Assembly: GCA_047495785.1 (NCBI GenBank)
Contig: JBLDXI010000002.1
Location: forward strand, 558,001 to 622,000
Source: Lepidodermella squamata
Lineage: Eukaryota; Animalia; Gastrotricha
DNA length: 64,000 nt
Direction: 5' to 3'
Of this stretch, positions 1 to 45,756 are shown in pieces (position 1 is the first letter of the stretch; every line of letters begins with the position of its first letter). The translations under genes and the position numbers were made by a program. The notes under the pieces were generated by a model. The model saw only the letters and a list, made by a program, of their open reading frames with translations, ran no database searches and was not told the DNA's origin.

Positions 1-5
1 TTTAC

Positions 6-5156: not shown

Positions 5157-8100
5157 TCACATCAGAATGTGACGCCTAGCCTTCGAAGCGGTGGTCGATT
5201 CAGTTGTAACGGTAGTTTCAGCCGAGGTTGAAGTTGCGGTCTTTTCGGTGGTTGTTTTGGCGGTCAGGCAAGTTTGCTGGCACTCGGCCTCTTCCTTGAA
5301 GAGTTTCAGGCCGCGACGGCAGCCGCCATACAAGAACTCTGTGCACGTTTGGGTTTCAGTATCGAAGTAAAACCTGTGGCGAGAAATAAAATGGTGAAAA
5401 TTGTGTTTTAGCGATAAGAGTTGGAAATTTACATGCGCTTAGCAGCCCGGCATTTCGAGGGAGTCTTAGCGTCGGGAGCTTTCCAGCCAGAGCACTTTTC
5501 GGTGCAGTTGAATTCGTCGAAGTGATTTTTGCAGTCGCCGTAGAAGCCATCGCATCGTTCTGAAGTTAAATCAAATTAAGAGATAAGAGAGCTGAACTTA
5601 GCAATCGTCTCAAGATTTTAAGCAACGTTTTAGGGCGTTTTTCTACAATTTTCTGAATGATTTCCTAATTTCCCCAAATATGATAGAAACCAGAACGAAT
5701 CCAGATCCAACTAATCCTTTTGACGTAAAAGGATTGGTTCCGCGGTCTTAAAAAGTGGATTAGCGATTTTTAAATTATCATATAATTCAAAAAATGTCCC
5801 AAAATTCAAAAAATTGTCCTTAATTCAACGGCGGTTTTGACACCGTTCACCACGATTTTACGGAAGAATGTGAAATTCATCTGAGAAAACCCGTCAATTC
5901 CCAATATGATTGATTTGAGAATTTTCGGAATTTTCCAAATATTCCAATTTCATTTACAGTAAGGGTAATAACCAGAACCATGAAATTCTCAAAAAATTTC
6001 CAAAACTCGAAAAATTCACAACCTTACTAGCAACCATCATCTCATTCCAAAAGTTCAATCAAAGCAATCGTCAGTTTATAATTTGAAATCAATCATGAAA
6101 TTATTGATTTTGAATATCGAATATCGATAACAAAAATGTCAAACTCGGGGTAAATAGGGCATTTTCACTCTAAAAAAATAACATAATAGGGACAATTCTC
6201 CGTGCAATACTTCGAAACAACTGGCTCGATCATAAAATAAAAAATTGAATTTTACCAGTGTCAAAAATCACTTCGTGCGACCTTGGGTCCTTCGGATTGC
6301 ACCGGAACAACTTTTTCTTTTCGACGATAATTTGACCTTTTTCGTCCATGCTCATGACACTGGACACGCTGCTGTCGAAGTCTTCAGTGACGGAAGGGAG
6401 GAAACCCTTCGAACCATCGAGCAAAATTTTGCGTTGACCTACTTTCTTGTCGCTTTTCTCATCTGTCTCAGCCTTAACAACAGTTTCAGCCGTAGTTGAA
6501 GCTGCAGCAGTGGTTGTAGTTGCCTCGGTGGTCAGACAAGTCCGTTGGCACTCGGCCTCTTTCTTGAAGAGTTTCAGGCCACGAATACAGCCGCCGTACT
6601 TGTACTCCTTGCATTTACCGCTTTCAGTATCGAAGTAATACCTATACGAAGTGAAGCATGAAAAAATGGCTGTTATATAGTAAAAACTGGGAAATTTACA
6701 TTAGAATAGCATCCTTGCAATCCTCGACGTCCTTAATGGCAGGGGCTTTCCAACCAGAGCACTTTTCGGTGCAGTTGAATTCGTCGAAGTCGTTTTTGCA
6801 GTCGCCGTAGAAACCATCGCATCGATCTGAAAATTAAATTAGATTGACAGTGCTTATTTTAAGGCATTTCTTTCCATTTTCTAACATTTCCATGAATTTC
6901 TAAAAATTTCCTGAAATTTATGAAATTTTTATTCTCAATTTCTATAATTGTTTCCTAATTTTTCTGATATTTTCGGAATTTTTCCTTGAAATTTGACGGA
7001 ACTTAAGGAACTCAAGGACCGAACCGCGCTTTCATGGAAGAGAATTTGAAATTTCCCGGAGAAAATCAGTTCAATTCTATGGGTGATTAATTCCAGAGTT
7101 TTATGGGATTTCAATTTCAATTTTTTCAAATTTACGTAGAACCTAGATGTAAATATTAGGAGCTACTTTACCTAATAATTTTCTCAAATTCTAGTTTCCG
7201 GTATTTTTGGTAATTAATTCATCTCATTACAAAAGAAATAACAAAATTTTACCAATATTTAATCAACAAGAATTTTGAAATCAACCACCAATGCCGAATA
7301 AAAATACAATTTTAGGGACATTTCTCCGTGCAAAACCTAGCTAAAAATTAGCTGGATCAGTTTGGAAGTTCAAAAGCCGATAGAAATTAGAATTTGAAGT
7401 TTACCTGATTCGAAAAATAGTTCGTGCGAATATGGGTTATCCAGATTGCACCGGAACGTTTTCTTCTTCTCGACAGTTATTTTACCATTTTCGTCCATGC
7501 TCATGACATCCGACATGCTGTCGTCAAAGTCTTCAACAAAGACATTCATGAAATCATCGAGCGTAGCTTTGCGAGACGCTACTTTCCTGTCGCTTTTCTC
7601 AGCCTTCTCATCCGAAGCAGAAGTCGCGGTGGTAAAAGTCTCGGTTTTCAAGGTTGTAGCTTCGGTCGTAGTTTCCACATTCTTGACCTCATCAGAGTTG
7701 ACAGCAGGGTTCTTGACCTCGATAGATTCAACCGAGCTCCGATCACTAACCGGCTCTTTGTAGAAGAATCCGTCGCATTCAGCCTTGCACTCCTCGGTCG
7801 TCTTGAACATGTTCGTAACCTCGGCACAGCCGCCGTACGTGAACTTTTCGCACTTGCCGGTTTCGAAGTCGTAGTAGAACATGGGAATGGCGGCGCGGCA
7901 GTCGACGAAATCGTGACGGGTCGGGTAACGCCAGCCCTTGCACTTCTCGCGGCAGTTCTTCTCGTCAGCACCGTTTTCGCAGTCGTAGCGGCCATCACAG
8001 CGGGCTGGAAAAAAGTCCAAGTTCAACAATTTTTTACTCAATTTTGCGAAATATTTGTAGATTCAATTGAAGGCAAACAAGTTTTTGAAATTACGGAGCA

Positions 8101-9425
8101 ATCAGATATCAATTTTGCATTTTTTATTCAAATTTTGAAATTTTTCATTTTTATTTAATTTTTAAAAATTTTGAAATTTTATTTTGAAATTTGAAATTTT
8201 TTTAAATTAAATTTTCATTAATTTTGAATTTCGTTAAATTTTAGAAATTTTGAATTTTTTGAAATATACCGAATCTCTAGCAATGATTGCGACTGATTTT
8301 CCAGAAAAATTCAATATCAATCAAGGACTAATTCGGGAGAATAATTACAAATAGCTGTGCAATTTTGCAGGTTTTCCCTAATTTTATGACAATTCGAAAC
8401 ATGATTTTGGGCTCAGGATTTGTACCTTTCGGGTAGTAGAACATGCCGGGCACAACGGTATCAGCGACAGAGTAAGTGGTCAGTCCGAGGCACGAAATGT
8501 TGCCGAACGGCTCAACCGGTTCGACAGTAGTTGTTTCGTCGCCATTTCCAGACGAAAGATCGATCGTTTCGAACGGCTCCAAGGTATCGTCGTCAGTGAA
8601 TTCGCCCTTCCTCTCTTCAGCTGTTTCAACTAAAATAAATGGGTGAGAAAATGTGCAATTCGAGTCAATTGAAGATCCTGAGCTTCTTACCTGGGCGGCA
8701 GTATGGCTTCCCAGACCATTCGCCGTTTTCGGCGCAGATGATAGTGGCTGTTGCTCCGGCGACTTCATAGCCATCTTTGCACGAGATGGTAACAGTTGAG
8801 CCGAATTTCTTGGAACTGGAACCATCGATGATGAAACCATAGGCAACCTTGTCCCAGACTGGGCAATCTAAAAATTAAAAATTATAATCAATTATTGATA
8901 ATTCAAAAATAAATTAAATTTTGAAAATTATCGAACATCTTACCTTTTTTGCATTTCCAGCTCGCTTTCCAAGCTCCAGCTTCGTCGCATGTTTTCGTGT
9001 ATTCGAAAACTGATTCGCCCTCGTTACACGTGGGCGGATTCGGAGCGGCGATCGAGTCGCAAGGCGACGCGGCCTTTTTAATGCAATTGCCGGCGTATGT
9101 CCACTTGCCCTCCTCGGTACAAGTTGCGAAATTATCGCCAGTCAGATCATAACCAGTTAAACATTCGAACTTGCGTGTGCTGCCAACCGTGTCCTTGCCG
9201 TCGAAAAATTTCTGGCCATCAAGCACTGTCAACTCGCCACATTTAATTTCTTTCAAATCTGCAAGTAAAAAAAATTTAAATTTAAATTTAATTATGCGAG
9301 TTCATTGAAATTTAAAAAATTTGAAAATTCAATAAAAAACTAGAAAATGAAATCTCATGCATACCTTGATGATTGGCCGATATACTCGCTACCATGAAAC
9401 AACAAAGCAACAACTTGGCGACCAT
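5157..9425 (-). CDS. Secreted Sushi x3-(LDLa-Kunitz) x3 protein, gene B, tandem paralog of gene A. Exons 9425-9365, 9258-8944, 8867-8691, 8629-8426, 8004-7405, 6826-6700, 6641-6256, 5559-5433, 5373-5157
   Basis: Signal peptide MVAKLLLCCFMVASISA. Three Sushi-like units (the second is shortened). Three LDLa-Kunitz modules with P1 R, K, R. TGA at 5157-5159 and AATAAA about 100 nt downstream. Confidence 0.88.
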
Positions 9426-9655
9426 TTTCCGCCCTGTTCAGTAAAATGAAGTTGTGTTAAACTTTTTATGTACCAATTAAATTAATGAAAGTTTAGTATT
9501 TATCAGGGCTTGAATGTTATTTTCAACCAGTGGGTCACAATCGAAGTAAAATTTTCGCGCGCGCGCGTGTCTGCTCGATTCTGACACAAGTCCACGCGAT
9601 TTCAAACTGGCACCAATAATAACAACATCACATGTGTTTGGGCTAATAATTCTGA
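9425..9655 (-). promoter_or_regulatory. Conserved upstream region shared by genes A (3143-3360) and B
   Basis: About 220 bp of alignable non-coding sequence (GGTCACAATCGAAGT..GCGCGCG..TGTCTGCTCGATTCTGACAC..GATTTCAAACTGGCACCAATAA), then abrupt divergence. Confidence 0.5.
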
Positions 9656-9953
9656 GACCCCTCCATATTAATTAAAAATTTGAAAATGATCCGCACCGAA
9701 AACAATGAGGATTGCAAATTAATTTGGTTAATATAAAATCGAACTATATCGATAATTGAAAATTTATATAGATTTTTACGGTTCCGGTTCACTGCTTCCA
9801 GCTTCAAGGCTCATTTTTTTATGATTTTCGCCTTTTTCTTCAAAAATATCAAGCCCAGGTTCACGTTATAATGGAAACATTGATTTGGATGTCCAAAATT
9901 AGGTCATTTTACCAAATTTTATTCAATGCTAAAAATGCTTATGTAATCAAATA

Positions 9954-10449
9954 TTAGGCCTTCAAAATCAGGTATAATGGTAAAATAATGCTAAGAAAAG
10001 TCATTTCGGGTCCAAATGCTTGAATTTTCGAGCCGGAATTGCACAAATTGCCAGTGCAGCAGTAGATGCTAACGAGGCGGTCCAAGGTGGGCACGCATGA
10101 ACTGGCGCATTGCCGATGCACGTTGTAGTCGATGTAGTGCCAGACGATTTTTGCACAGTAACTCTGAACGGAACTACAATTAAGCCCATACAAATTGGCT
10201 TTGTTCGACGATTGACAATTTTGACAGCTAAATCAAGGTGAAAAATAATTATAAAAAAATTCACCCATTTAAAAAAATCATGAATATTACCTGTAGCACT
10301 GTTTCAAAACCGAGACGTAAAAAATTGAGAAATTTTAATCTAAGTGATTTTGGATATTAAAAGAAAATGTTTACCTCCAAGCAATATGTCATTTGGAAAA
10401 TTGAGAGCAGCGATAATAATGTCGAGGTCAAGCGGTAATTTTGTTCCAT
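9954..10449 (-). CDS. Ly6/uPAR (three-finger) GPI-anchored protein with an 8-nt microexon. Exons 10449-10375, 10298-10291, 10227-9954
   Basis: Splices to MEQNYRLTSTLLSLLSIFQMTYCLE-CYS-CQNC...CCTGNLCN plus a hydrophobic tail. Ten Cys of the LU domain. Confidence 0.75.
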
Positions 10450-11081
10450 TTCGCGTTGGTTCGAGCAATTTTACCAACTTTTTTTAAAGACGTGTTTTTA
10501 TTGAACTCAGTGTTGGTCTCAAAGCCATTTTATGATGAAGTACCGGTAGATTTAGCGTGGTAAATAGTGTAGTAAATCTCTTTGTGTAACACCATGGATG
10601 CATAAACTGTCAGTTATAGACTCAAAGAGTCTCGACATTTTGAGAGCGTGGTAAAATATGAGACCCCAAAAAATTATTAAAATGTTTAACAAAAATAACA
10701 AAAAAACAAACCAAGGCAAAAATTCCACGTCGAAATAAGTTTTATTCAATTATTCAAAATTTATATTGCTGAAATTAATGTTGAGAAAAAATTAAATTTC
10801 ACATTGAAAAAAGTTATTGGGTTGTTATATTATTTATTTATATATGTCGTATCGTATAAGGCAATTCCTCCAATAGCCGATAGAGATATCTCAATGAGCA
10901 ATCCGAAAGTTGCTTTTTCCCTGTTGTTTTCATCAGCCTTCAGGTTTTTGAATTATAATCTATCACACATTAAAGAGCCCGAATAGCCCCATCGATTGGA
11001 CTGCTAATTGATTAATAATGAGTTTAAATGGACCCAGAAGGCCAGAAGACAGTTACTGTGAAAATCCACATTGGAATTTTT

Positions 11082-11432
11082 TTATTTTACAAGAATAATT
11101 AGGCATATTAGGAGAATAATATTGGTTAATCCGAATAATGATTGGTTATCAGCTTCATTGCAAAGATCAGTTTGGCAGCAGTTGATTTCGAAGAAGCCAT
11201 TTTTAAACGGAGTGCAGGTGACAGCACACGATCGGCTGACAAAGTAATCAATGAAGCGGAACGTTGTCTTGGCGCATATCGTCTGAGCAGTCCCGCACGT
11301 TGTGTTCTCGAGCAACGAAGGCGTTTTCACCTTGCAATTGCTGCACGAGTAGCATTGAAATGCGTCCGTCAAGCTGTTGAACGAGATGAGTATCACTAGG
11401 ATGGCGAAAAGTGATGGTGGTAACAACCGCAT
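11082..11432 (-). CDS. Ly6/uPAR (Quiver/CD59-like) GPI-anchored protein, intronless CDS
   Basis: Signal peptide, FQCYSCSNC...CCQTDLCN, hydrophobic C-terminus. Confidence 0.9.
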   Translation of the reverse strand: MRLLPPSLFAILVILISFNSLTDAFQCYSCSNCKVKTPSLLENTTCGTAQTICAKTTFRFIDYFVSRSCAVTCTPFKNGFFEINCCQTDLCNEADNQSLFGLTNIILLICLIILVK

Positions 11433-14931: not shown

Positions 14932-14978
14932 AAGCCCCATTTTCATACGGCATGTCCCGAATTTGAAGTTTGAACTGC

Positions 14979-15320
14979 TCAGAACTTAATCATGTAAGCA
15001 AGGCAGGCCGCCAGCAGGAAGATGGCCATCGAGTTAATCGCCGGCTCGAACGCAACCCCAGTATTGCAAAGATCCGTCTGGCAGCACCCAACAGTTGCTT
15101 GGTCGTTTTCGGTCGCCGTACACGAGCTGGCGCAAGATTTCGACAGATACCCAGTTTGTTTGATGTACGTCAGCGAGCAGTAGGGCTGAATGGCGGAGCA
15201 GTTGGCGTAGAGTGTCTCATTTTTCTGGCAATTGGCGCAGGAAATGCACTTGAGCGCGTCGACGCCGTTCGGCAGCACGACGGCGGCCAAAGCAGCGATG
15301 CAGGCGATAATTTTGAGCAT
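14979..15320 (-). CDS. Ly6/uPAR GPI-anchored protein, intronless CDS
   Basis: Signal peptide, LKCISCANC...CCQTDLCN, hydrophobic tail. Confidence 0.9.
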   Translation of the reverse strand: MLKIIACIAALAAVVLPNGVDALKCISCANCQKNETLYANCSAIQPYCSLTYIKQTGYLSKSCASSCTATENDQATVGCCQTDLCNTGVAFEPAINSMAIFLLAACLAYMIKF

Positions 15321-16210: not shown

Positions 16211-16555
16211 TTACAGTGCCCACATTGCCGCTACGGTAACCAAGATTAAGGCTGAGCTGTAGCTGGTAACCGGCGAAGAGTTGCACATATCCGTCTGGCA
16301 GCAGTAAACGTTCAAGTTGTCGGAGGTGGAAGCAGCGCAAGAAACGGCACAGCTTTTCTGCATTATGCCAGTTGTTTTGAAGTCGAAAGTAGCGCAGTAC
16401 TTCTGGTCAGTCGTGCAGTTGATGCTCGCTATAACGGTTTGGTTAGGTTTGCAGTTGGCGCAGGACAGGCAGCTCAAGCCATCGGCGACGTTCGATAGAG
16501 CGATAGCGAGGACGAGTCCAGCGATTGCGCTAATAATGTACTTTCCCACGGCCAT
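16211..16555 (-). CDS. Ly6/uPAR GPI-anchored protein, intronless CDS
   Basis: Signal peptide, LSCLSCANC...CCQTDMCN, hydrophobic tail. Confidence 0.9.
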   Translation of the reverse strand: MAVGKYIISAIAGLVLAIALSNVADGLSCLSCANCKPNQTVIASINCTTDQKYCATFDFKTTGIMQKSCAVSCAASTSDNLNVYCCQTDMCNSSPVTSYSSALILVTVAAMWAL

Positions 16556-19366: not shown

Positions 19367-22300
19367 ATGGCCAGTCGCTTGCTAGTGGTTTCGATAGCAG
19401 TTTCGGCAATGCTAATGGTTGGATCCGCTCTTAAATGCTACAGGTAAATCGTCTTGAGCCACCGAGTTTTAACCTAATTGAAATGCTGACAATCAATCCT
19501 TGAATATTTAAATGTTGGTACCAATTAAAATACCGAAACTTACCAATTAAAATACCAGTTACCATCGGGGTTTTCCGGGTTTTTTCCGGTTAAACCGCGG
19601 ATAGAAGATAGAATATTTTCCCGGTAGGTTTACTCTAAAAAAATTTAGTTGAATTTCCTACAAAACCTGGGACCCGATGTTTTGTAGGTACTTGAAGCAT
19701 TTTTAATCCATTATTCGAAAAAACCTAAGAAAACCCGAAAAAACCCGATTGGTAATTATCGGTATCAGGGGCGTAACCAGGAATTTTTTTTGGTAGTTGT
19801 TCATAAAAAAAGGTCGTAAAACTCTATACGAAGAAAAAAGATGAAGAAAATGCATTAACATTCAATTCCCATTTTTCGCTGCGATTCGGCAATATCAAAG
19901 TCGAAACAAATATGAAAAAATCAAAGGTCAAAGCACCAAATTAAGGCGTCGAGCTGCCTCGCGAGCAAAAATGTCCATAATTTCATCTGGTGTGACGTTA
20001 ACTTCGTAGTGAACAGCCAACAGCGATATAGCGACCAGGCGCTCCTCCCCCATCGTGGCACGCAGCCAGGTCTTCAATCTTCTAAGAGTTGAGAAGGACC
20101 TTTCGGTCTCACATGTCGTCACAGGTAGTGTCGCCAATAGCTGAAAAAGGATTGCGATATTGGGAAGATCGAAAGCCAAAACGAGAGAGTTCATTGCATT
20201 AGTCGGGCGAAGCTCCGGCTCCAACGCTGCGCAGCGCACTTTCCATCGATCAAACTCGGCGCTGATCATGGATTGAGTGCCAGGGAGGTCTTTGCGATAA
20301 ATTTCAACCAGAGGTAAGATCTTTTTGAAACCAGCTTCGATGCAATACTTCGGTTGCAAGTAATGAAAAGCGGTTAGTAACCCGCGATGCCGGCCGAACC
20401 TAACCTCGAGCTGTTCGAGCACAGATCGAACATAAGGTTCGAACACGGCTAGCCGCCAATAATCCTTGATGTTTGAAGCCTTCGCAGCTCGCGGCAAACC
20501 CAAAGTAACGCCCAAGGATAAAGCTAGCTTTCCTGCCTGGTCAAAAACATCATCGAAACTTGTTTCGTCGAGTAACTTTTCCAAGAGAGCGATCGTTTCG
20601 TCCAAGTTGGCTATCGCTCCTGCAAGATCCATTTGCGTGGACTGCAGTTTAACAGCGAGACCCACAGTATGAGACAAAATTTTGTCAGCTGTTAGCAATC
20701 CAATAATGAATTCGCTATTGCGAATCGCAGAGCTTAGTGCCATGGCGGTCGAAGCAGTTTGTCTGTCAGTAGATTCTTGGAGACGAGTCAAAATCAAATC
20801 AATGGCAGGGAATAATTCAACAAAGCGCAGCAAAGAATCGTGATTCTCAATAAATCGCGTCTCGCAAAAAGTTATAAGCTTCTCAACCGTTGAGTCGGGG
20901 AAAATCGCATGGACAGCTGCTTTGAAAGCTGCTTGTCGTTTCGGCGAACCATTTATAAAATTAGTACACTGTTCCACTACACCGAACGTGCGCTGAATTG
21001 CGGCGATTTGATGCTTCGTTAATAGGCTGAGGTTAAGGCTGTGGTTTGCACAATGAAGATAGAAAGCCAAAGGATTTTTCCGCAAGATATGCGCCGCACA
21101 TCCCTCCTCTTTACCAGCCATAGCAGCGGCGCCGTCATACCCTTGGCCGCGAAGATAGTCAATGCTGAATCCAAGTTGAGTCAAAAATGTGAGGATAGTA
21201 TCAGCAATGTTTTCTCCTGTGCAATCAACAATAGCAACGAAACCGAAAAATTCCTCGTGAAGTATCATATTCTTGATATCAACCCATCGAACGACAATAG
21301 ATAGCTGCTCTTGTCCGCTGATATCTGCGGTTTCATCGGCTTGCACAGCGAAAAAGGTCACATTGCCACAGCGTTTCAGCAGCTTCATTTGAATCAATCG
21401 GCCGCCGATCGACAAAATTTCATTCTGTATTTTCGGGCTAAGATATGTTGCGTTGCCAGCAGCATTTTCGAACTTAACCGGACAGCCACACTCAACTGCG
21501 AAACGGAGCAACACGCGGAAATTACCATCATTAGATTCATGAAAAACGCGTTTTTTATCGGGCAGTGAATGCAAGGGTCCTGAGTCTTCGTGGCCACGTA
21601 GAGCGATGCCTTGACGTGCGCAAACAAGCACCGACCAAATTATAGGCTTCAAATACTCTCGATTTGCGGCGATTTGAGCAGCGCGGCCTTTAATCATACT
21701 TGAAACAACATCAGGCGCGTCATTTTGCACAATGCTAGCCTTGAAGTTTTCAAATGATTCCACGCTTTCCTCGTGATACTTTTTGGTGGAATGCGCGCGA
21801 AAAGCTTGTTTCGCTTTGGACCAAAGATTGAAAGCCGATGATACCAACGCACTATCGTCGATCCGATTCCCACCGGATCCGGTCGCTCGTTTTTGGTAAA
21901 AAAGGAAGCATGGCAAGCAAAAAGCGCCATCTAAAACCTTGCTGTAAGCGAGGAACGGAAATTCTTTCATCCAAGAGAAGTTGAATTTCAAGTTTCGATG
22001 AGTGCTTGCTGGGAATTCAAATTTTTCCGAAGGGAGCCACAATTTCAAAATAATGTCTCGCCGGTCATCAGAAGAAAGCTGCTTGTTAACGAAATTTCCC
22101 AAATCAAATTCTTCAGTTGCAATGCTTTCGATCTTAGTTCGTTTGCTTGGTATCAAAGAAGTATCAGATTTAACTCGAGTGATAATAAGAGCTGAATTTT
22201 CAGACGCGGCGTTGCTTGCTGGAGGTTTAACTAGGGGTTGAAAGCTATTAGCTGAATCGTCATTTTTGAAACGAAACTGCTCAAGTTTCTGCTTTACATT

Positions 22301-23249
22301 AGACATGATCTACAAATAGAAGGCAATAACGTGCGATTAGAAAGGCCATAAAAACCTAATGAATTAGAACAACTAATTTTTTCCTTGGAAATTATTTAGG
22401 ATAAGGCGATTCAAGTAAGATTGCAATGCTTGTTCTTAATACATGGCTGTAATACCAATCATAAATAAAACGCGATTCAATTAGACGACAATTAAGCTTT
22501 CATGACCTATTTTTAAACGAGAACGCTCTTTTATTGCAATGCGAATTACTTGCTGCATGCTTGCTGCTCGGCGGTTTGCAAAATGGCACGCGATCTACCA
22601 CACTCTCAAAACTCACAGTACTGCAAAAAACTAGGCATCGCGCGTCATAACTGTGTGTTATGAGAATAAAATGAGTTGAAATGGTTGAAAAGAACGAAAA
22701 TCCCGAAAAACTGGTGGAGAGGGGTTTTCGATTTTCCATTTTGGTAGTTGTTTGAACAACCAAAACAACCAGCTGGTTACGCCCCTGATCGGTATTTTAC
22801 CTGTTTCATTAAATTTGACAATGTGTGAATGGCTAATTTTGAAAAGGCATATATCAAAGATCGAATTGCATCAAATATGAGACACCCTGAAATCCTCAAT
22901 TTTCTATCAAATAAAATTGCTCACCACTTTATTATGTCTCCTTTTTAGCTGTGCCAACTGCGGCGGTACTGCTGCAACTTCGACAAACGCGTCGGATAGC
23001 ACAGGCGTCGCGATAGAATGTCTCACGTCGCAAAGCTACTGTTCGCAGATAATAACTAAAACCGGCACGCCGTACCAGTACCTTCGATTTTGTACAACCA
23101 CCTGCACAGCTTCGAATGGAACTGGCGTCGAAATTTCGTGCTGCCAGACCGACCTGTGCAATACCGCAGCGCCGGGCGTTGGAACGTACAACATTATCGC
23201 TCAAGTTGTTGCTATTTTAACAACGGCTTACTACGTTGCTATTTACTGA
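19367..23249 (+). CDS. Ly6/uPAR GPI-anchored protein with a 3.5-kb transposon-filled intron. Exons 19367-19443, 22949-23249
   Basis: MASRLLVVSIAVSAMLMVGSALKCY(AG|gtaaat...ttttag|C)S-CANC...CCQTDLCN plus a hydrophobic tail. The intron position and phase match intron 2 of the 9954 gene. Confidence 0.82.
19766..22787 (-). mobile_element. Full-length autonomous hAT DNA transposon (3,022 bp)
   Basis: Perfect 15-bp TIR CAGGGGCGTAACCAG (19766-19780 and 22773-22787). Perfect 8-bp TSD ATCGGTAT (19758-19765 and 22788-22795). Subterminal TTTTGGTAGTTGTT near both ends. Confidence 0.95.
19928..22306 (-). CDS. hAT transposase, 792 aa (THAP12/PRKRIR-ZMYM1-like)
   Basis: TTF-type zinc finger (GAFCLPC..HSTKKYH), ALRGH..GNF, catalytic ADET and YDGA, CxxH (HCANH), and the C-terminal dimerisation motif PVTTCETERSFSTLRRLKTWLR. 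Confidence 0.93.
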   Translation of the reverse strand: MSNVKQKLEQFRFKNDDSANSFQPLVKPPASNAASENSALIITRVKSDTSLIPSKRTKIESIATEEFDLGNFVNKQLSSDDRRDIILKLWLPSEKFEFPASTHRNLKFNFSWMKEFPFLAYSKVLDGAFCLPCFLFYQKRATGSGGNRIDDSALVSSAFNLWSKAKQAFRAHSTKKYHEESVESFENFKASIVQNDAPDVVSSMIKGRAAQIAANREYLKPIIWSVLVCARQGIALRGHEDSGPLHSLPDKKRVFHESNDGNFRVLLRFAVECGCPVKFENAAGNATYLSPKIQNEILSIGGRLIQMKLLKRCGNVTFFAVQADETADISGQEQLSIVVRWVDIKNMILHEEFFGFVAIVDCTGENIADTILTFLTQLGFSIDYLRGQGYDGAAAMAGKEEGCAAHILRKNPLAFYLHCANHSLNLSLLTKHQIAAIQRTFGVVEQCTNFINGSPKRQAAFKAAVHAIFPDSTVEKLITFCETRFIENHDSLLRFVELFPAIDLILTRLQESTDRQTASTAMALSSAIRNSEFIIGLLTADKILSHTVGLAVKLQSTQMDLAGAIANLDETIALLEKLLDETSFDDVFDQAGKLALSLGVTLGLPRAAKASNIKDYWRLAVFEPYVRSVLEQLEVRFGRHRGLLTAFHYLQPKYCIEAGFKKILPLVEIYRKDLPGTQSMISAEFDRWKVRCAALEPELRPTNAMNSLVLAFDLPNIAILFQLLATLPVTTCETERSFSTLRRLKTWLRATMGEERLVAISLLAVHYEVNVTPDEIMDIFAREAARRLNLVL

Positions 23250-26851: not shown

Positions 26852-29075
26852 TCAAGCTTCAACCGGACCAGCGGCGAGCGGCGTTTCGACCGGAGAAATT
26901 TCGTCGATTTTCGCGTTTCCAGACGATTCGATTAAGCTGGCTGTTGTGGTTTCGATGACAACGACTGAAGAACCAGATTCGCCGAAAACTTTCTTATCAA
27001 ACGATTCGACTGTTTCGGCCTTTTCTGTCGTAGTTTCAACATAGGCACTAGTAGTAGCCTGCTCGGTTGTTGTAACAGTGGAGTCCTCGATTTTCTCGGT
27101 GGTGGTCGTAGTAGTCTCGGCAGCATTTTTGCCTTGCGGTACAACATCAGTCGTTTTGAACACCTTGCATTCGCGTTCACACTCCGACTAAAATTATGAA
27201 AAAAATGAAAAAAAATATTAAAGTTTAAACATTTCAATTTCAAATTTTTCAATAATTTTTTTTTGACCTAGATTTCCTCGCAATTTGACCCAATTCTAGC
27301 TTAATAATTCTTATCGGCATTTCTGAATCGGCATCAAATAGGAGGAAAATATTCGATTTTTCCGAAAATTATGAACATACCTTAGACAAAAACATATTCG
27401 CGACATTGGCGCATCCACCGTAGCCGAAAGGCACGCATGACGTCTTCTCGTAATCGTAGTAAAACCTGAAAATTACAGGAAATTTGTTGAGAATAATGAA
27501 TGAGAAGGAGATTGTATCTCACCGAGGAATGTAAGCGCGGCAATCGGCCAAATCTTTCTGGTAATCGTATCGGAAACCGCGGCACTTGCTCGGGCAGTTC
27601 AATTCATCCTCACCGGTGTCATCGCAGTCATAGATGCCGTTGCAACGATCTAAAATGATAGACAACGAACAATAAAACAAACACCAAAAATTATTAAAAA
27701 CAAATTGAAAAAAAATCACTGAGACCTCAAACCTGCAATCAAAAACTCCCAAAAGAAGATAGTGGAAGTGAATTGCCCATTGTATAACAGCTTGTAGTGA
27801 AAATCAGAAAATCACTCAAAAATTCAGAAATCCCAAAATTTAGTGTTTCAGCAGTAAATTTAAAGATTTTTCTGAACGCCACTGGGGTTTTCACGCTATT
27901 GATCCCACTAAAACGCGTAATTTGCGTTATTAGCGATCAGTTTGCCGGTCACACTTCACCCCCAAGAGCCAATATCGATTCCAAGTTACGATTTTTTTAC
28001 AAATCAGTGTTTTTTCCATAATTTGCAGCGAAGGAAGCCAATAATGATAAATGTCTACCAGGCTGACGGTACCAGGCAGCTAAAAAATCCCGGGGTCAGT
28101 ATCGAACAAGAAAAAAATTAGCCGGAATCTCAAGCAATTGGAAAAATATATTCTATGACCGCTCAAATTTTCCGCTATAACCTTTATTTTAAAGCCGCCT
28201 ACATTGCTAACCTCTCCTCCATATCGTCCCATTTTTGCCTAAAATAAAACCTATTGACCTAGAAAACACGCGTTGCCCTATTTGTAGCAATAAAACAGGC
28301 TGGCAAAAATGAGGTCACGGCTGCGCAATTTTACACTGATTGCCAGAACTAAAGCTCGAAAATGCCTAGTCGTCGCTTTGATTTTACTGATTTTGATGGC
28401 TGCCCATCCGCCTTAAAAAAAGTAATATTCAAGTGGACCCTAATCAGAAATTTCATCGTTAACGATTTAAAAAAAAATGTAGTATAAGAAAAATAAATAA
28501 ATGTAGCAATAAAACATGTATCAATGATTGTGATTGTAAGGTTTTCTAAAATATTGAACGCGCCAGCTCTTACCTGATTCCCGGTAGAACTGATGTTCGT
28601 CATTATTGCACGGAATATTAGCCGCCGGCAATTCGCCAGAACCTGAGCCAGATTTCGGCGAGGTGACCTCGCCATTCTCGTCCAGAAAATAGAACACCGT
28701 CGCATCAGTGCCAACAACCGTACCCGGCGCCACCTTCTTCTCCCACTTCGACACCACCTGACCATCGATGACCTGGCCAGTCTTGTTGTCACGTGACTTG
28801 ACCTTGACCGCGTAGTAATCAATCTCGGCGCTGTTTTCGTCCGATTTATCGCCGCTGGCGAATTTCTCACGGCTATTGTCGTCCTCGCGGCTGTTATCTT
28901 CCCGGCTGCGGTCCTTCAGCGACCAGGTTTGCTGCGGCAGTTCTTTCGCGATGTTCGACGACGACGACGCGGCTTGATTATTGGTGATAGGCGAGGCGAT
29001 AGCTAAATGCCAATACGCGGCGATGGCGAACGAGGCCACGAAAATTGACACGTAAATTCGTACTCGGTCTAACAT
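26852..29075 (-). CDS. Secreted LDLa-Kunitz protein, gene C, with an acidic SxE-repeat N-terminus and Thr-rich tail. Exons 29075-28574, 27649-27523, 27465-27381, 27187-26852
   Basis: Signal peptide; IPCNNDEHQFYRES|DRCNGIYDCDDTGEDELNCPSKC...CRAYIPRFYYD..C..FGYGGCANVANMF..ECEREC. Confidence 0.85.
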
Positions 29076-30298: not shown

Positions 30299-31436
30299 TC
30301 AATTGGCATTCGACCGGCGGCATTCACGTTGACACTCGGCTTTGTCCAGAAAAATGTTGACCAATTTAGTACAGCCGTCGTAGATGAACGAGACACATTC
30401 AGCCCGATGATTGTCGAAATACACCCTGAAATATATTTCTTTCAAATTTAATTACGATTATTGCATTTTTAATAGGTAATTAACTATCAAGTATATAATA
30501 ATAAAAATTTAATATACAGCGTGTCCCATGAGCAACGCAAGCAAAGAAAATACACGGAAAAGGGTACAGAAATTCCAAAATGAGAGAGGAAGTCACATCT
30601 CAAGGCCAGAAAATGTTTAGAAAAATTCAAAAAATCACGATAATAGATAGAAGTATGTCACTTGGTAATGGAATTAAAAAAATCTAGAGAAATTTGCTCC
30701 GACCGGGTAAAATACCTTAAATTACCGAACCAGTTAAATTACCATCGGGGTTTTCCGGGTTTTCTCCGGTAAATTTTTGGTTTTTTTCGGTTTAATCGCG
30801 AATAAAAGATGGAATATTCTCTCTGTAGGTTGAATTAACAAGAAAATAGTTGAATTTTATACGATATTTTCTACGCAACTTCTGGGAAAAATTTTCCAAA
30901 GTTTCACCTTGCTATTTCGGCTTTGCAATGAACCACATCGGTAAAATTGTAAATCGGCCCGAGGCACTTGCTAGGGCAGTTCATTTCATCATCAGCCATG
31001 TTGTTACCAGTTCCACACGTGTACTTGCCATCACACCGATCTGGAAATTATTATTACAATTAAAATTCAGAAAAAATCAGGATTTTTTCGAACCCGTCCC
31101 GCAGAAAAATGAGGTTTTGCGAGACCCGGTCACGCATGGCTGAGTGCACGGTGGCGGCGTCGGCTGGGTAATATCAACATTCCAGTCTTCCTCGCTGATA
31201 ACCTGACCAGCTGGTTGATCTTGCTCGGGGTTATCACTTATCAAGAAGTCTTCTTCCTCATCCGATTTTTCGGCATCACGTTCGTCTAGATGTCCGATCT
31301 GCCTGAATGATTTAGCTTCGAAAATCACCATTTCGGCGTAATTCGCGTTATTCCTGAATTTTTCTGCCGGATATGACCAGCCCGAAACCAGTATTAAGGC
31401 CGATATGCCGATAAGAACCGCGAGAAAACTTGGCAT
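30299..31436 (-). CDS. Secreted LDLa-Kunitz protein, gene D. Exons 31436-31094, 31040-30908, 30425-30299
   Basis: Signal peptide MPSFLAVLIGISALILVSG and an acidic region. CTQPC..FFCGT|DRCDGKYTC..DDEMNCPSKC..CKAEIARVYFD..C..FIYDGC..VNIF..ECQREC. The exon 1 donor (gttcga) is weak. Confidence 0.75.
30517..30860. mobile_element. R1 mariner-like repeat in an intron of gene D
   Basis: Starts TA|CAGCGTGTCCCA; colinear with 3438-3760. Confidence 0.7.
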
Positions 31437-32974: not shown

Positions 32975-33379
32975 TCAATCAGCCCTGTTGGTGTCATTGT
33001 TTTCAGATTCCACTTGATCGCCTTCGCAACCGTAATCTTCGGGTGTTGTAGTTGTTAGTTCTGTGGCGACCGTAGATTCCGTGAAATTAGCCGGCGTTGA
33101 GGTGACCGTTGTAGTAAAAGACTTGCCTCGTGCAGTAGATGATGGCGAATCGATTATTTCACCGCTGCTGTTTTCTCGCGACTCGCCGCTGTCATCGCCT
33201 TCACCGCTGGTGTCTTTTCGTGGCGATATTTCAGACGGCAAGGCATTCTTGTTGTTGTTTAAAACCGATTCCTCAAGTTGATTATTGGCGAGTGGCGATG
33301 CGCTGGCCGCGTGCCAATAAGCGGCGATAGCGATCGAAGCCACGACAATCGAAACGGTAATTCCGGTTCGGTTCGACAT
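32975..33379 (-). CDS. Secreted acidic Ser/Thr-rich protein; stand-alone paralog of gene C exon 1
   Basis: Signal peptide homologous to gene C (VASIAIAAYWH.A.ASP..NNQ). DTSGE/DDSGESRENSSGE repeats. AATAAA at ~32840. No LDLa-Kunitz exons follow. Confidence 0.7.
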   Translation of the reverse strand: MSNRTGITVSIVVASIAIAAYWHAASASPLANNQLEESVLNNNKNALPSEISPRKDTSGEGDDSGESRENSSGEIIDSPSSTARGKSFTTTVTSTPANFTESTVATELTTTTPEDYGCEGDQVESENNDTNRAD

Positions 33380-37952: not shown

Positions 37953-39288
37953 ATGAAAAGAGCCATGGACAATGCAGTAGTCGATTCAGGAAACAAGTTC
38001 AAATGCCCGGTTTGTATGGTTTCTATCATCGATCCCGAAATATCGGGTTTTCACACCCTGTTATTCTCAGGTATGCCAGGCCGCTACCGATGGCAAGAAA
38101 AGGTGTGGCGCCTTGGTATGTGAGGCATGCAAAAGATTCTTTCTAAGGCAGCGAGCTTTCACCGATAGTATTCGCCACACCTATTGCAACGAATCACGGG
38201 CTAATGTTAGCAAAACCGGTGCAAATATACGTAACACCTGCAAAAAATGTCGATTCGACTTGTGCGTCGAGGTTGGAATGCACCAGCAGGACCGGAAAGA
38301 ACGAAAATTAGCGAAACTCAAGGCGGCTAAGCTGTCGGAAGCTCCTCCTGTTAGCCAAATTCCATTGGCAGAGCCAGCGAGGCTTGAGGCGATTCAGAAT
38401 ATTTTAGTCACCCGAGCTATCCATCTGAGGCACCAAATCAACACCCAGCCATACAGAAGGCGCGATTCCCCTATGGTTTTCGACATTGATATGGATACTG
38501 CTCTAATGTGGACACTGAGTATGGAACATATTGCTGCTGTCGCTGTTATCCAGCGAGAATTTCTCAGCAGTTTGCCCGGGTTCAAAGACCTCACCGTGTC
38601 GGATCGATGCAAGTTATTCTCAAATTCCTACTCCAAAATCTCGGTGGTAAACTCGTGTTGCGAGGGCGAGGAACTTGCATCCGGATTCAGTGGTTCTAAA
38701 GTAAACTGTCGGGTCTATACCATAAAGTTACCGGAAGTTTCGGTGAGTCAGAATGAAACGGAGGAAATTCGTTTAATTGTGTATTTTATAGTACGCTCTT
38801 TTGGAGGCGAATCACCTCGGCCGAGTATTCGATGCTTGGAGGCCGTCAGACATTGAACTCGCAGTTTTAATGGCTTTGCTGTTTCTAACTGGTAATTACA
38901 GATATCAGCATTTTCAATTTTCTTAACCCCTTTCAATCGAATCCTTCAAGGCCTACCTGCAGAAGCTCTGGAAAATCCGTCCGCTAGAGATAAGGCTGTG
39001 AAGCACATTAAAAATCTTCATTGCTGCGTGACCGGTGGCAGCGAAGAACGAAAAGCTTGGCTATGTTACACCATGGAGCAATTCGCTGAGGTCGGGACCC
39101 GGCGATCAATGGCTTTTCAAAAAGTACTACAGCGATGTCCGGAATTCATACCGTCGAGTCGAATTCTCGTTGAAATGGTTGATACCGTTCTGAGGGGATC
39201 CCTACCTACAGACGTTGATAAAAACGCCGGCGCTACTGATGAAGATTCTATATTTACCTGGGACTCGCTGGGATGTGAGATGTCATAA
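37953..39288 (+). CDS. Divergent nuclear hormone receptor (~388 aa). Exons 37953-38009, 38071-38742, 38792-38891, 38951-39288
   Basis: C4 DNA-binding domain CP|VC..CGALVCEACKRFFLR..RNTCKKCRFDLCVEVGM. LBD signature FLSSLPGFKDLTVSDRCKLF, helix DIELAVLMALLFL, and AF-2-like ILVEMV. Confidence 0.85.
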
Positions 39289-39992: not shown

Positions 39993-40575
39993 ACGTGAGG
40001 TACGAGGTAAAGTTAATTCAGAAGTCAAGACAGCTCAAAATATTGATACACTGCGACATCAATCAAGCATCTGGACAGGTGACCCGGAAAGACAGTTGAT
40101 ATGAGCTCCCCTGATGACTTATTTCGTCGAGCTTCAAATGTACTGTAATGGGAGCTTCGAAGCCGCGGCGTCCTTTAGTACGTCTCATGAGATGGGCGAG
40201 GCGATACCTAGCAATTTTTCGAGCCTAACCCATGGACACTCTAAAATCGTCGAGTCGCAGCTGAATTTTAAGTTATTATATTTTCGTCTTTTTTTATTTT
40301 CATTTTCATTCTTCCTTTTGAGTTCAATGCACCTTCGAAATCTTGATTAAAGAAGTGACTTATTTACTCGATTTAAAATTCAAGTCGGATATGAGCAACA
40401 ATCAGGTTTTATTCATCAAAAATTGTCGTCATTGAAGATGATGGTGAAGGTCGAATGTTATAAGTTCTTTTTCAAATAACAAGAGCTAAAACCGACATGA
40501 AGCCTAATAATAGAAAATTGATGACGATTCACTATATGGATTTAAGCTTTGTTCGAGTATCAGACAAGAACTTGT

Positions 40576-43226
40576 CTAAAAAGCGGGTATAATTTCAAGG
40601 TCATCGCCCACAGTTTCACCGGACGTGTTCGGAATGACGACTTTTTCCGGCTTGATTTCGGGCGCAACATCGCCAACACCGACGAAAGTCCCGCTCTCCT
40701 CAACTTCAGGCTTTAGTGTTGTAGTAGTAGCAGCAGCAGCTGTGGTTTCCTCGGTAACTGAAGCAACGGTAGTAGAGCTTGCGGTTGTGGTCTCGTTTTC
40801 AACGACTGTAGTGACTGGTTTTTGAGTCGGCAGCGAGGCCCATGTTCGGTTGACGTAGATGCCGGCGCATTCAAACTCGCACTCTTCTTTCGACAAAAAC
40901 TGGTTCGGCACAACCGCACAGCCGCCGTAGTTGAAGAAGACGCACTTTTGCGTCTCAAAGTCGTAGTACCAACTAAAGAAAAGTTTGCAAAGAAAAGAAT
41001 ATGAAGGGAATAGGAAAAAAAAGAACTAAATAAAGGCCATAGTTTAAATTGACTGAAATTGATCAGATTTCATTTCTAAAAATCGATAGATCTGAATTTC
41101 TCGTACGGTCTTACAGTTCGAAAATTATCCATGTCTGAGATTTTACCAAGTTTACCAATTGGTTACCAATTTATCTACCAATCCAAGACAGAAAATTTGA
41201 AAGAAAACAAATTCAATTTCAATTAGATATTAGATCCGCATTTCATTCAAGACAATTTTGAAAATTGAGTGGAATCAAATTTTATTTTTCAAAAATATAG
41301 TCAAACAGTCAATTTTCAAATTAAAATTTTTTCATATTAAGCTTAAAATTTGAAATTGAAATCGAATTTGAAAATTGACTGTTTGACTATTTTTGAAATG
41401 TGAAATTTTTGAAATTCAAATTTTTTTAAATTGAAATTGAAATTTCAAATTTAAAAAAATTCAATTTTAATTCAAATTTCATTGAAGGCTCAAATGTTTC
41501 AAATTTTACACGGCACAAACAGCAAATTTAGAAAATGAAATATTTTTTTCAGCGAATTTAAATAATTTTGAAATTTCAATCTGGAAATTTATGAATAATA
41601 TATCAAAAGGAAACACTGTCCGAATTTAGCAGCCAAATTCCAAGTATCGATTTTTAAACTCCGGTACCCAAGTTTTGGCAGCCTATTCTCAGGACGCTGA
41701 AATTTAGGGCCTGACCTAAATGAGGTGAAATGTCAAGACCCTTACCGAGGGATAGAGGCTCTGCAATCGAGGATGTTAGCCTCCTCTGTGTAGCGGAACC
41801 CAAGGCACTTGCTCATGCAGTTCTTCTCATCCTCGCCATTCGGACAGGCATAGTAGCCGTTACAGCGTTCCGTTTCGTTATAGAAATGCGTCTCAGCTGT
41901 GCTATCGTTACGGTTGATTGAGCACGGAATCGTACCCTCCGGCTGCTTCGAAGCGTGGTCTTCCTCGCCGATATTCACCGCATCGCCAGTGTTCGCGTCG
42001 TAGTCCGAGTTGTTGATGCTGGAGGTCCGGTCGTCAGTTGTCATGTACTGGGCGCATTCGCGTTCGCACTCGAATTTTTTCATAAACATATTGCGCTTCT
42101 CCACGCAACCGCCGTAGATGAAAAATTCGCACTGCTTTGAATTAGGGTTGAATTGGTACCTGAAAAAATCAGAAAAATCAGAATATTAAACCATAAACGT
42201 TTTGCGCTATCAAGTAAGGCTCGAACATATGCCATTTTGAATTTGAAATTTGAAATTAAAATTTTGAAATTTTGAAAATTTGAAATTAAAAAAATAAAAA
42301 TATTATAAAAATTTTAAAATTCTAAAATCCGCTCTTGAGATGATAAAAAAATCAAAAAAAATCAATCTTATGAAAATCTTTTATTTACTCTTGAATTTGT
42401 TACTTATTGAAAAATTAAAAAAAAATTGGTGATTCACATTTGAAAATTTTACCTCAATTTCGACTGTTGGCAATCACGTTGATACATCTCCTGGCTGTAG
42501 ACAGGCTCGAGACACTTTTGCGGACACCCTGCTTCATCACGGCCGTTCGAGCACTTGTAAAGCCCGTTGCAGCGATCTATACAAATGGAAAAGAATTGCG
42601 AAGAATAAAAATTCAACAATTAAAAATTTCAAATAATTAAAAAAAACTTTTTTAAGCAAATTTTGCAAAAAACTGCAAAAATGTTCATGAGAATTGAAAA
42701 ATTTATAATTCTAAATTTTCGATTAATTGATCAACATTTCAAAAGTCTCTGATCTCTAAATTTTCAAATTTCATCTGCTTTATTTTTAGAAAATTATCTC
42801 ACGTTGTTGAGTGAAGCGCTGAAGCTTTTTCATCATTGGAAGACTAGCATGGAGATTAGGATAGCATGGGTAGCTGTTGCCAGCAGCGCCCTGTCCCTGA
42901 ACAGCGCTCCGATCCAGACCGTTCTGATTCTCGGACGAAAGTCGTCGCAACCACGCCATCTCATTGGCGAAGGTCCAGTACGGAATCAACGGATTGAACA
43001 GGTGGTTGAATGGTGCCCAGTGGAAGGGCGGCCAGTTATCGTCGTCATTAATCGCCGTTTCGACCTGAGCAGTCTTTTCGGCCGTTCGATCAGGCGCCAT
43101 GCGGTTTTGCGGAGATCGCGATGAATCATCATCGTTGCCCTCGAAAAAGTACCAACCAGCCGAGGCGAAGTTGGCCGTGAAACATAGGCTCAAAATAGCC
43201 GAAGCTACGAAAAACTTTGATATCAT
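40576..43226 (-). CDS. Secreted (LDLa-Kunitz) x2 protein, gene E. Exons 43226-42803, 42576-42453, 42159-41746, 40972-40576
   Basis: Signal peptide MISKFFVASAILSLCFTANFASA. Modules HRCNGLYKCSNGRDEAGC-Kunitz (P1 Q) and RCNGYYACPNGEDEKNC-Kunitz (P1 R). Thr-rich tail. Confidence 0.85.
41297..41390. repeat. Perfect 26-bp inverted repeat in an intron of gene E
   Basis: ATAGTCAAACAGTCAATTTTCAAATT / AATTTGAAAATTGACTGTTTGACTAT. Confidence 0.7.
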
Positions 43227-43676
43227 TGGTTGAAAATTAACAAAATTTGTGTGTTGTTTTCGAAATAGGAAATAAATTTTGAAAATGAGAGAGATGTAAA
43301 TGGCGTGTTGGCTACGTTGATTATGCAGTTAGGGTGACATTTGGCATGTTGACTAGCACGCGCCAAGCAGAGCATCTGTGAAGTTATTAACCCACCCAGC
43401 AAAATGAAGGGACGGAAGTCCAATAATTAATGCGTTTAGGCTACACGTGGTTTGTGCGAAAACAAAATTAATAATAAAAATTTTATGTAATTTAAAATTG
43501 GAAAATTTTTGAAAATTCTTCAAATTAATGACTAAAATTAACTAAAATTAATTCAAGGTTCGGGTTCAAGGTTTGTTTGAAATTTTAAGTTTCCAAAATA
43601 AATTCATTATTTCTTTATTCATCATGAGTCATCACGAATGCAAAGTGACGTTTCGAGCGTTTTCGTCGGAATATAT

Positions 43677-43749
43677 AGGTCAGGGTAATAATTAGGCTTG
43701 AAAGCGTGACCTAGGTCACTAAAAGGGTCACCTGCAATGCGATTGACCT
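43677..43749. promoter_or_regulatory. Cluster of five RGGTCA nuclear-receptor half-sites upstream of gene E
   Basis: AGGTCA 43677, TGACCT 43707 directly abutting AGGTCA 43713, GGGTCA 43725, TGACCT 43744. Confidence 0.35.
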
Positions 43750-43996
43750 AATTAGTTGCCGTTTTATGGCAAAAGCTGGCATTCCTTTCATTTGCACGTG
43801 TCGAACCCAACTGACTTAAAAGTGTTCGAAATTTCATAATAAGACGATATTTTCTTCGAAATTTCGGAAATAAAAAAAAAATCACGATCTCAAGGAAATT
43901 CGTTATTCGTTGTTTATTCGTTAAATCGACCAGAAAAATTGGTTATGAAATCATTGATAAGAACAAATTACAACAAAAATTGGTCTTTTTAAAGGC

Positions 43997-45756
43997 TCAA
44001 GGTTGCGTGTTATTCGCAGCAATGACCTGTTGAGTAGTCGTAGTCGTGACTTCTGATCCGGCAATTCCGATTGTCGTCGTTATTTCAATCTCGAGCGCCT
44101 TAATACCGGCAGTGGACGGGATTTTCATCACCTTGCACTCTTCCATGCATTCTTCGGCCGTTTTGAACTGATTCACGACATCGGCACAGCCGCCGTAGTG
44201 GAAAAATGCGCAATTGCCAGTTTCAGCGTGGAAATAATACCTGAAAAATCGGAAAATAATTTGAATTATTTTGATTTTTTAATTTGAAAAATTTGAATTT
44301 TTATTTCAAAAATAGCTGGTTAGTTTTTTTACCTGGGAATGGCAGATCGACAGTCTAACAAATCAGGCTGGTCCGGATACCGGAATCCCTTGCATTTATC
44401 CCGACAATTTTTCTCATCAGCTCCATTCTCACATTTGTACAAGCCATCGCATCGATCTAAAAATTGATTGGTCTACATTTGACTAGGAATTTCGAAAAAA
44501 TTGTTACCAGAATCGTTGTAGTACTGACGTTCTTTCGGGTCAACAACCGATTCGTCGCACAGATATTTTCCCAAAATAGGCGCTGCCTGATTCGACCCGA
44601 TTGACTCGAATGTGTCATCAGATTCCAAGGTGTAGTCACCCTTGAGAATTTCCACCCCACCAACAGCCGACCTTAGGGCAAGGTTGTCCGGTAGGCACTC
44701 GAGTTCGCACTCTGATTTCGTCAGGAACTGATTTTCTTGCAAAGTACAGCCGCCGTAGACGTAAAATTCGCATTTGTTCGATTTCAGGTCGTATTGCCAG
44801 CGAGACAGCGACCACTTGCAGCCGTTTATGTAGCCCTTCTCCGTATATTTAGGGGCGATGCATTTACTAGGGCAGCCACTTTCGTCACGGCTGTTCGAGC
44901 AGTAGTAGTCACCATTGCACCGATCTAAAAAATAATTTTTTTTTCAAATTAATTTAAAATTAAGGCGGATTTTTTTATTTTTGTTTCAATGCAAAAATTG
45001 GTGAACTGCAACCTATTTCAAAGGTTAAAATTAAGCTGTTGCTCTTCAAAATCTGAAATTTTAACCAATGATGGGCAAGGTTATTCCTGATTTTTCTGAA
45101 ATTTTTGGGAAATTTCCTATGCTCATATTATTTTGACAATTTAAAGCGTGTTTGACTAGCAATTAAGGTAGGTCATTTTATGCGCGTATTTGCATATTCA
45201 TCACCTCATTAATTTTATGACTTGACCTTGAAAAATTGGGTCAATTTTACATAAAAATAAAGGAAAAGCATTGACCGGTTTTTAACTCCAGATAATGAAT
45301 TTCCTCCCAGTCCAATATTACCAGATTTTTTATACCTATCAACTTCAAAATTTAATTAGTAAAATTGCATTCCATTAACTAACCAGACTCGGAGAAAATT
45401 TCCTGTAGGCCTCCAGTTTGTTGCTGTTGAGGATAACACGGCCAAGTTCGCACTCGCATGACTCCATTATTGGTGCCAGCAACACCTGAAATGCCAGCCT
45501 TGTTGATCATACCAAACGGGTTCCCGAATCCACCAGCAGCGGCAGCATTATTGCCCCAGGGTTGCTGTGGGGCAGCTCCAGCTTGTTGTAAATTGTTGTA
45601 GCCAAAATTGTTACGATTATAACCCATATTATCAGCATTGGCTTGCCAATAATTCGATAGCTGACGGCGGTGAATTGATTTTTCTTCGCAATTGACGCTG
45701 GACACCAGTAGGGTGACCACAACGAACAATTCTATAATTCGAATTCCCCTAACCAT
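43997..45756 (-). CDS. Secreted (LDLa-Kunitz) x2 protein, gene F, with an N/Q/G-rich N-terminus. Exons 45756-45384, 44924-44508, 44456-44333, 44240-43997
   Basis: Signal peptide; DRCNGDYYCSNSRDESGC-Kunitz (CKWSLSRWQYD); DRCDGLYKCENGADEKNC-Kunitz (CRSAIPRYYF). Confidence 0.85.

Follow-up and report, generated by a model that had tools for sequence, protein, structure and literature searches.

Engineered protease inhibitors are often built on the Kunitz domain, a favourite scaffold, and the LDLa repeat is a classic lysine-binding calcium cage. In HAI-1 (SPINT1), the domains are arranged in the order MANEC-PKD-KD1-LDLRA-KD2 followed by a membrane span, and neighbouring domains tune the inhibitor (PMC12940448). 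The LDLRA of HAI-1 is a canonical six-cysteine domain joined to KD2 by a 21-residue linker (354-374), and the protein has a membrane span (PMC12940448); an original prediction, made from the DNA letters of the locus studied here, had named LDLa and Kunitz as canonical neighbours in this protein. Here we analysed a 64,000-nucleotide stretch of the gastrotrich Lepidodermella squamata (assembly GCA_047495785.1, contig JBLDXI010000002.1, positions 558,001 to 622,000; hereafter the window), in which six genes, A to F, carry a repeated module that joins an LDLa-like half to a Kunitz domain. Both halves have homologs among known domains, the junction between them is free of introns, the modules are under selection and are duplicated together with their linkers, and the same anatomy is conserved in a second species. 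Judging from sequence, the genes probably form a tandem family restricted to this lineage, whose products would be secreted, mucin-linked and multi-headed inhibitors of the Kunitz type, directed at trypsin-like serine proteases.

Six-frame regular-expression searches, together with an alignment and a local hidden Markov model (HMM), identified 11 modules in the window; every one lies on the minus strand, and they are exactly those counted in the original prediction (2+3+1+1+2+2 for genes A to F). The modules scored 64.7-79.6 bits against the local HMM and the next best window open reading frame (ORF) at most 7 bits, and the same HMM search detected no decayed additional copies in the window. 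A profile search of the 121.2-Mb, 151-contig assembly gave 12 full matches (E values 4e-15 to 7e-21), all located at this one locus; the twelfth, at C2:557486-557611, lies about 400 bases ahead of the window start and is the third module of gene A. The remaining genomic matches were one partial match, covering only the long-loop Kunitz part, and weak matches limited to model positions 1-20, most of which coincided with canonical LDLa repeats at their 3' ends. With the module alignment as profile, the genome gave no half-LDLa that lacked a Kunitz domain. Searches were run exon by exon, and exons were kept unjoined for both searching and folding. Each of the six genes starts with a signal peptide, Sushi exons occur only in A and B, and Thr-rich linkers are present in the inhibitor genes; because of the signal peptides, the Thr-rich linkers and the absence of a membrane span from the ORFs as read, the products are predicted to be secreted.

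The modules share the motif x-R-C-[DN]-G-x-Y-(x)-x-C-...-D-E-x-x-C, followed by a three-residue linker ending in Lys and by the first cysteine (C1) of the Kunitz domain. In the alignment of the 11 window modules no variation occurs at R, C, G, Y, C, D, E, C, K, C and C; of these, R, G and Y are fixed in all 16 modules (the 12 of this genome and four of a relative described below) and are specific to the module. The linker, originally described as constant, has three residues in 11 of 11 window modules, the last always being Lys, and keeps this length in the relative. With the cysteines of the acidic lobe numbered C4 to C6 as in a canonical LDLa repeat, ten window modules, when read across splice sites, have exactly one upstream cysteine, located 13, 16, 16, 16, 18, 19, 19, 22, 23 and 23 residues before C4. 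Gene D alone has three, for a total of six in its LDLa-like part, in a non-canonical spacing (x3, x10, x4, x5, x12); this reading agrees with the earlier count of six cysteines in gene D and four in the other ten modules. Each inter-module linker contains exactly one cysteine, and an aromatic pair is conserved 5-7 residues before C4, about where a canonical repeat has C3 and the following Ile or Val. The four plus six cysteines per module would fit a pairing of the lone upstream cysteine with C5 and of C4 with C6, extrapolated from the known LDLa pattern, as might be left in LDLa after loss of the C1-C3 bond.

Kunitz domains were recognized by Pfam exon by exon at 32.4-46.7 bits, above the gathering cut-off of 21, and those of the relative at 45.6 (P0005) and 39.9 bits (P0006). 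Cysteine spacing after C2 is canonical (15, 7, 12, 3). The first spacing is non-canonical in all 16 modules, at 12 in gene D and 13 in all others (ten of the 11 in the window), and the C1-C2 distance of 12-13 residues originally read, compared with 8 in BPTI, was borne out. At its start the loop is still similar to the C-L-E-P-P-Y of BPTI, which places the extra 4-5 residues past the Tyr10 equivalent, within P3-P6 of the binding loop. The reactive site is BPTI-like (C-[RK]-A-x-I-P-[RM]) and YGGC is present. Across the 16 modules P1 is Arg in ten, Lys in four, Gln in one and Met in one, and P1' is Ala in most. The Pfam Kunitz model aligns only from about C2 onward, as do all but one (Ixolaris) of the 60 listed of 114 PDB matches. 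The Kunitz fold class thus holds, but the subtype is atypical.

The other half had been described as a mostly four-cysteine LDLa domain, a description that stood for its C4-C6 part and failed for the part upstream. Pfam LDLa scores are 11.4-18.4 bits, under the gathering cut-off of 24.1, and cover model positions 20/21-37 only; the signal begins no earlier than position 20 even where the upstream half is contiguous with the lobe in one exon or ORF. Canonical LDLa repeats in the same genome, of which there are at least 133, score 37-54 bits. Comparison of the LDLa-like regions with 22 of these canonical repeats by hhalign gave a probability of 95.9% (E 5e-9) over an alignment of 20 columns only (columns 17-36, C4 to C6). 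The upstream stretch of 13-23 residues, with its one cysteine, is not LDLa-like and varies in both length and sequence, and the six-cysteine LDLa pattern (C1-C3, C2-C5, C4-C6) is absent, 15 of the 16 modules having four cysteines. At the level of sequence, only the C4-C6 half is homologous to LDLa, and the whole is not a recognisable four-cysteine LDLa domain.

The claim that the module binds calcium was examined through its acidic ligands, of which one pair is constant and the others vary. The ligands of the calcium cage are Asp after C4, Asp before C5 and Asp-Glu before C6 (LR5 structure, Fass et al. 1997). Asp-Glu before C6 is present in 16 of 16 modules, and the residue following C4 is Asp in ten and Asn in six. 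Asp before C5, which is nearly invariant among canonical LDLa of the same genome, is kept in eight modules and replaced by K, K, K, T, A, Y, S or L in the other eight. Canonical calcium binding is therefore likely in only about half of the modules and doubtful in the other half, because Asp before C5 survives in only eight of them.

The arrangement of introns and the pattern of duplication were compared between the modules. Ten of the 11 in the window have a phase-1 intron two codons before C4 (donor G|GT, acceptor ..AG), and eight have a phase-2 intron that splits the codon six residues past Kunitz C2. The junction between the LDLa-like lobe and the Kunitz domain is split in none of the 16 modules of the two species. 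The intron before RC was considered as a mark of a recent two-exon join and rejected, as the relative lacks that intron and the LDLa-Kunitz junction is never split. Within gene B, a genomic unit of 1268 nt has been copied to give modules 2 and 3, seen as direct repeats D1 and D2 with 75-79% identity; the unit takes in exons, the small intron and the linker, and the linker of module 1 is related to that of module 2. Duplication in one piece, as originally proposed, was thus found at the level of module plus linker, copied as a 1.27-kb unit. Genes A and B, which are the two youngest paralogs, differ by a synonymous divergence (dS) of 0.36, with a ratio of nonsynonymous to synonymous divergence (dN/dS) of 0.23 for the module 1 exon (193 codons) and of 0.35 for piece A of module 2; their Thr-rich linker is more relaxed (0.70).

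To search for relatives we used a 32-column profile of the junction, designed against swamping by proteins with multiple LDLa or multiple Kunitz domains. In 1.84 billion representative proteins (HMMER) it retrieved only two clusters, with E values of 3.6e-21 and 7.4e-19. They derive from ENA metagenome contigs of two samples and represent one diverged relative; the contigs are animal DNA, with adjoining Patched-type, RhoGEF-WD40 and lipocalin genes. P0006 is the ortholog of gene E, with 44-70% identity per exon, and P0005 is an ortholog of genes A/B, with 62% identity over module 1. The relative's loci (L003 1501-2699 and L005 3615-4729) hold four modules, which retain the four cysteines, the three-residue linker ending in Lys and the 13-residue loop; all four are without the phase-1 intron before RC, whose counterpart after ..IPR is retained in two. 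The A/B ortholog of the relative has two modules, and therefore the third arose in the L. squamata lineage by whole-unit duplication. Genes neighbouring the relative's modules are also long uninterrupted ORFs, and intron density at orthologous positions differs markedly between the two species. Word-based protein searches with a window exon, P0005 and P0006 returned only generic Kunitz proteins or the queries themselves, and scans of JGI metagenomes with two alignments found no relatives. In the literature we found no paper describing an LDLa-Kunitz fusion other than HAI-1, and none describing Kunitz genes of gastrotrichs. The HMM, word-based and literature searches support that the module does not match a described widespread family.

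Structure was predicted by AlphaFold2 for a single-exon module (19 alignment rows) and for a complete module from an uninterrupted ORF of the relative (26 rows). The Kunitz core was modelled with a predicted local distance difference test score (pLDDT) of 70-86. Foldseek comparison of the model returned only Kunitz structures, matching to about 1 A over 40 residues, with ShPI-1, APPI, BPTI and HAI-1 KD1 among them. In the ESM Atlas, a feature search gave no usable match, and the structure matches were generic Kunitz proteins that rest on a poor model.

Under the reading that we favour, each head consists, in order, of the variable 13-23-residue stretch with one cysteine and an aromatic pair, the acidic C4-C6 lobe, three residues ending in Lys, and the long-loop Kunitz domain, in which the binding loop is 4-5 residues longer than usual on its non-primed side (between the equivalents of Tyr10 and Cys14 of BPTI). 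The heads would inhibit proteases through the canonical mechanism with P1 Arg or Lys, and the acidic lobe may sit against the lengthened loop and so shape the choice of target. P1 Arg or Lys, P1' Ala and an intact YGGC secondary loop are the signature of active trypsin inhibitors (MEROPS family I2).

Several observations weigh against this reading. P1' is not small in four or five modules (Asp, Gln, Trp), so that some heads may not inhibit, and the extra residues at P3-P6 could weaken canonical binding. The acidic ligand before C5 differs even between orthologs. In both AlphaFold2 runs the LDLa-like part and the long loop had pLDDT below 50, so that the prediction, which had been proposed as a check on a conserved interface, delivered the Kunitz core and no confident interface. 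In addition, an ankyrin-CCP-Kunitz gene on the same contig, about 470 kb away (C2 ~1.03 Mb; L002, C2:1028501-1031500), contains a long-loop Kunitz domain without an LDLa half (minus strand, about 1381-1470 and 1183-1359 of L002), in which Lys precedes C1, the C1-C2 spacing is 13 and P1 is Gly. Its exon begins two residues before C1, at a phase-1 acceptor, and a phase-2 intron follows ..IPR as in the window modules. Because L002 has both the Lys and the long loop without the LDLa half, these two traits are features of the Kunitz subtype rather than of the fusion; the original description had listed the long loop as part of a fused supermodule. The LDLa half is either an addition to the long-loop Kunitz subtype or was lost in the L002 copy.

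Three other explanations have to be weighed against multi-headed inhibition by the canonical mechanism. It seems unlikely that LDLa and Kunitz form a rigid calcium-binding unit, as originally suggested, in which bound Ca2+ fixes the geometry needed for inhibition. The invariance of the three-residue linker and of DE, the R, G and Y shared by all 16 modules, the junction that never holds an intron and the retention of all four acidic positions in six to eight modules favour such a unit, but the erosion before C5, which touches half of the modules and distinguishes orthologs at a position nearly fixed in the genome's canonical LDLa, speaks against it, as do Asn after C4 in 6/16, the occurrence of D, E or A at the Trp-type position two residues before C4, LDLa scores under the Pfam cut-off and an AlphaFold2 model without a confident interface. 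Eroding calcium ligands speak for a beads-on-a-string arrangement, in which the half-LDLa would be a decayed relic, a disulfide-stapled spacer before an ordinary, independently folding Kunitz domain; the variation of the N-terminal part in length (13-23 residues) and sequence fits as well, and so does the long-loop Kunitz domain that stands as a separate exon in the ankyrin-CCP-Kunitz gene. A relic, however, would not be expected to keep eight invariant residues and a fixed three-residue linker across paralogs and a species at 44-70% identity, nor to show dN/dS values of 0.23-0.35, and we regard this arrangement as unlikely.

The Kunitz fold is also used for binding other than inhibition, as in dendrotoxins and collagen VI. 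The window proteins might accordingly be not protease inhibitors but ion-channel blockers, or components of a matrix, an adhesive or mucus, and the mucin-like linkers would suit a matrix or mucus role; the lengthened loop, too, sets the modules apart from every solved inhibitor matched. With P1 Arg or Lys in 14 of 16 modules, P1' Ala in most and the YGGC secondary loop intact, this seems very improbable. A more specific version of the inhibitor reading, which we put forward as a long shot, is that the acidic lobe and the lengthened P3-P6 loop form an exosite by the reactive site, making these two-point Kunitz inhibitors in which Ca2+ would govern the choice of target or switch the head on and off; in modules that have Lys in place of the lost Asp ligand, the built-in positive charge might stand in for the metal. 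Overall, the observation behind the original prediction was confirmed, and its interpretation was partly supported.

All six inhibitor genes lie on the minus strand. Gene A (1..3170) is paralogous to gene B, in tandem with it, and extends past the start of the window, so that one of its three modules lies outside; module 1 (1455..1685) occupies one exon and module 2 (262..552) consists of piece A (424-552), an intron and piece B (262-366), both with P1 Arg. Gene B (5157..~9437) encodes a signal peptide, two Sushi exons, one of which (8847-8695) is matched by P0005 residues 39-87, and three modules with Thr-rich linkers between them; its stop (5157-5159) comes after the third Kunitz domain. Module 1 of gene B (7775..8005; P1 Arg) has the half-LDLa, linker and entire Kunitz domain in a single exon, scores 46.7 bits for Pfam Kunitz and 18.4 bits for LDLa (model positions 21-37), and takes its upstream cysteine from the exon ending at 8427, 23 residues ahead of C4. 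Module 2 (6536..6827; P1 Lys) is made of piece A (6699-6827), a 58-nt phase-2 intron and piece B (6536-6640), and module 3 (5268..5560; P1 Arg) of piece A (5432-5560), an intron and piece B (5268-5372).

Gene C (26852..29075) encodes a signal peptide and a single module spread over three exons, namely piece A (27522-27650), 27381-27464 and a last Kunitz exon near 27170; its upstream cysteine lies 13 residues ahead of C4. An exon at 32975-33379 (minus strand) closely resembles the first exon of gene C (28521-29075) in its signal peptide and start; downstream of it no module or Kunitz exon was seen before gene D, and it may represent either a paralog that has been truncated or a gene whose 3' exons are different. 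Gene D (30299..31436) encodes a signal peptide followed by a single module with P1 Lys, made of piece A (30907-31041) and piece B (30320-30424); in this module the C1-C2 spacing of 12 is accompanied by a four-residue insert ahead of DE. Gene E (40576..43226), the ortholog of P0006, has a signal peptide and two modules, namely module 1 (42452-42577 + 42054-42158), with P1 Gln, and module 2 (41745-41933 + 40867-40971), with P1 Arg; because no intron precedes RC in module 2, its upstream cysteine, 19 residues before C4, is readable in one exon. Gene F (43997..45756) likewise has a signal peptide and two modules, the first in one exon (44695-44925; P1 Lys) and the second in two (44332-44457 + 44135-44239; P1 Arg).

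The window has a guanine-cytosine content of about 40% and short introns, and its other contents are those of an animal genome, with Sushi, Ly6-like, nuclear receptor, ankyrin-array and hAT transposase genes. Four small genes for Ly6/uPAR-like three-finger proteins are scattered among the inhibitor genes (11082-11432, 14979-15320 and 16211-16555 on the minus strand, 22917-23249 on the plus strand); all four products begin with a signal peptide and have a hydrophobic tail at the C terminus. Between the Ly6-like and inhibitor genes lies an intact 792-residue ORF (19928-22306, minus strand) that by eye is a hAT/ZBED-type transposase; its exact sequence is absent from a collection of 15 billion proteins, and exact look-up of four complete small window ORFs in the protein collection gave no match. 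A nuclear-receptor-like gene (38113-39288, plus strand), on the strand opposite to the inhibitor genes and between D and E, encodes part of a C4 zinc-finger DNA-binding domain and a ligand-binding region.

Two features of the window modules were without match in the papers and solved structures found, namely the weld of half-LDLa to Kunitz and the lengthening of the non-primed loop by 4-5 residues. Should the lobe contribute to recognition, it would represent a new way to raise the specificity of a small inhibitor; otherwise the family would be a further example of the heavy Kunitz reshuffling in a little-studied phylum.

Among known systems, HAI-1 is the one well-studied protein with an LDLa-type module ahead of a Kunitz domain, and its KD1 matches the modelled fold. 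The window modules differ from it in having only the C4-C6 half of LDLa, a three-residue linker, a unit repeated one to three times and a predicted soluble product; neither MANEC nor PKD nor a membrane span was found in window ORFs or Pfam scans, which places the genes outside the HAI-1 type. With BPTI, ShPI-1, boophilin and SmCI (PF00014, MEROPS I2) the modules share the six cysteines, the 15/7/12/3 spacing after C2, a BPTI-like reactive site and YGGC, whereas their C1-C2 distance is 12-13 instead of 8, the insertion falling after the Tyr10 equivalent on the P3-P6 side. To the LDLa repeat (PF00057) they are alike in the C4-C6 lobe with CxG..C....DE..C, but they have four cysteines in place of six, an N-terminal lobe that is not recognisable and, in half of them, one acidic ligand lost. 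The same Kunitz subtype occurs in the ankyrin-CCP-Kunitz gene, which shares the Lys before C1, the 13-residue loop and the phase-2 intron after ..IPR, and differs from the window modules in lacking the LDLa half, in its phase-1 intron two residues before C1 and in Gly at P1. Compared with these systems, the locus combines familiar parts in a variant form that is under selection and was found in one other species only; it does not amount to a system of a new kind.

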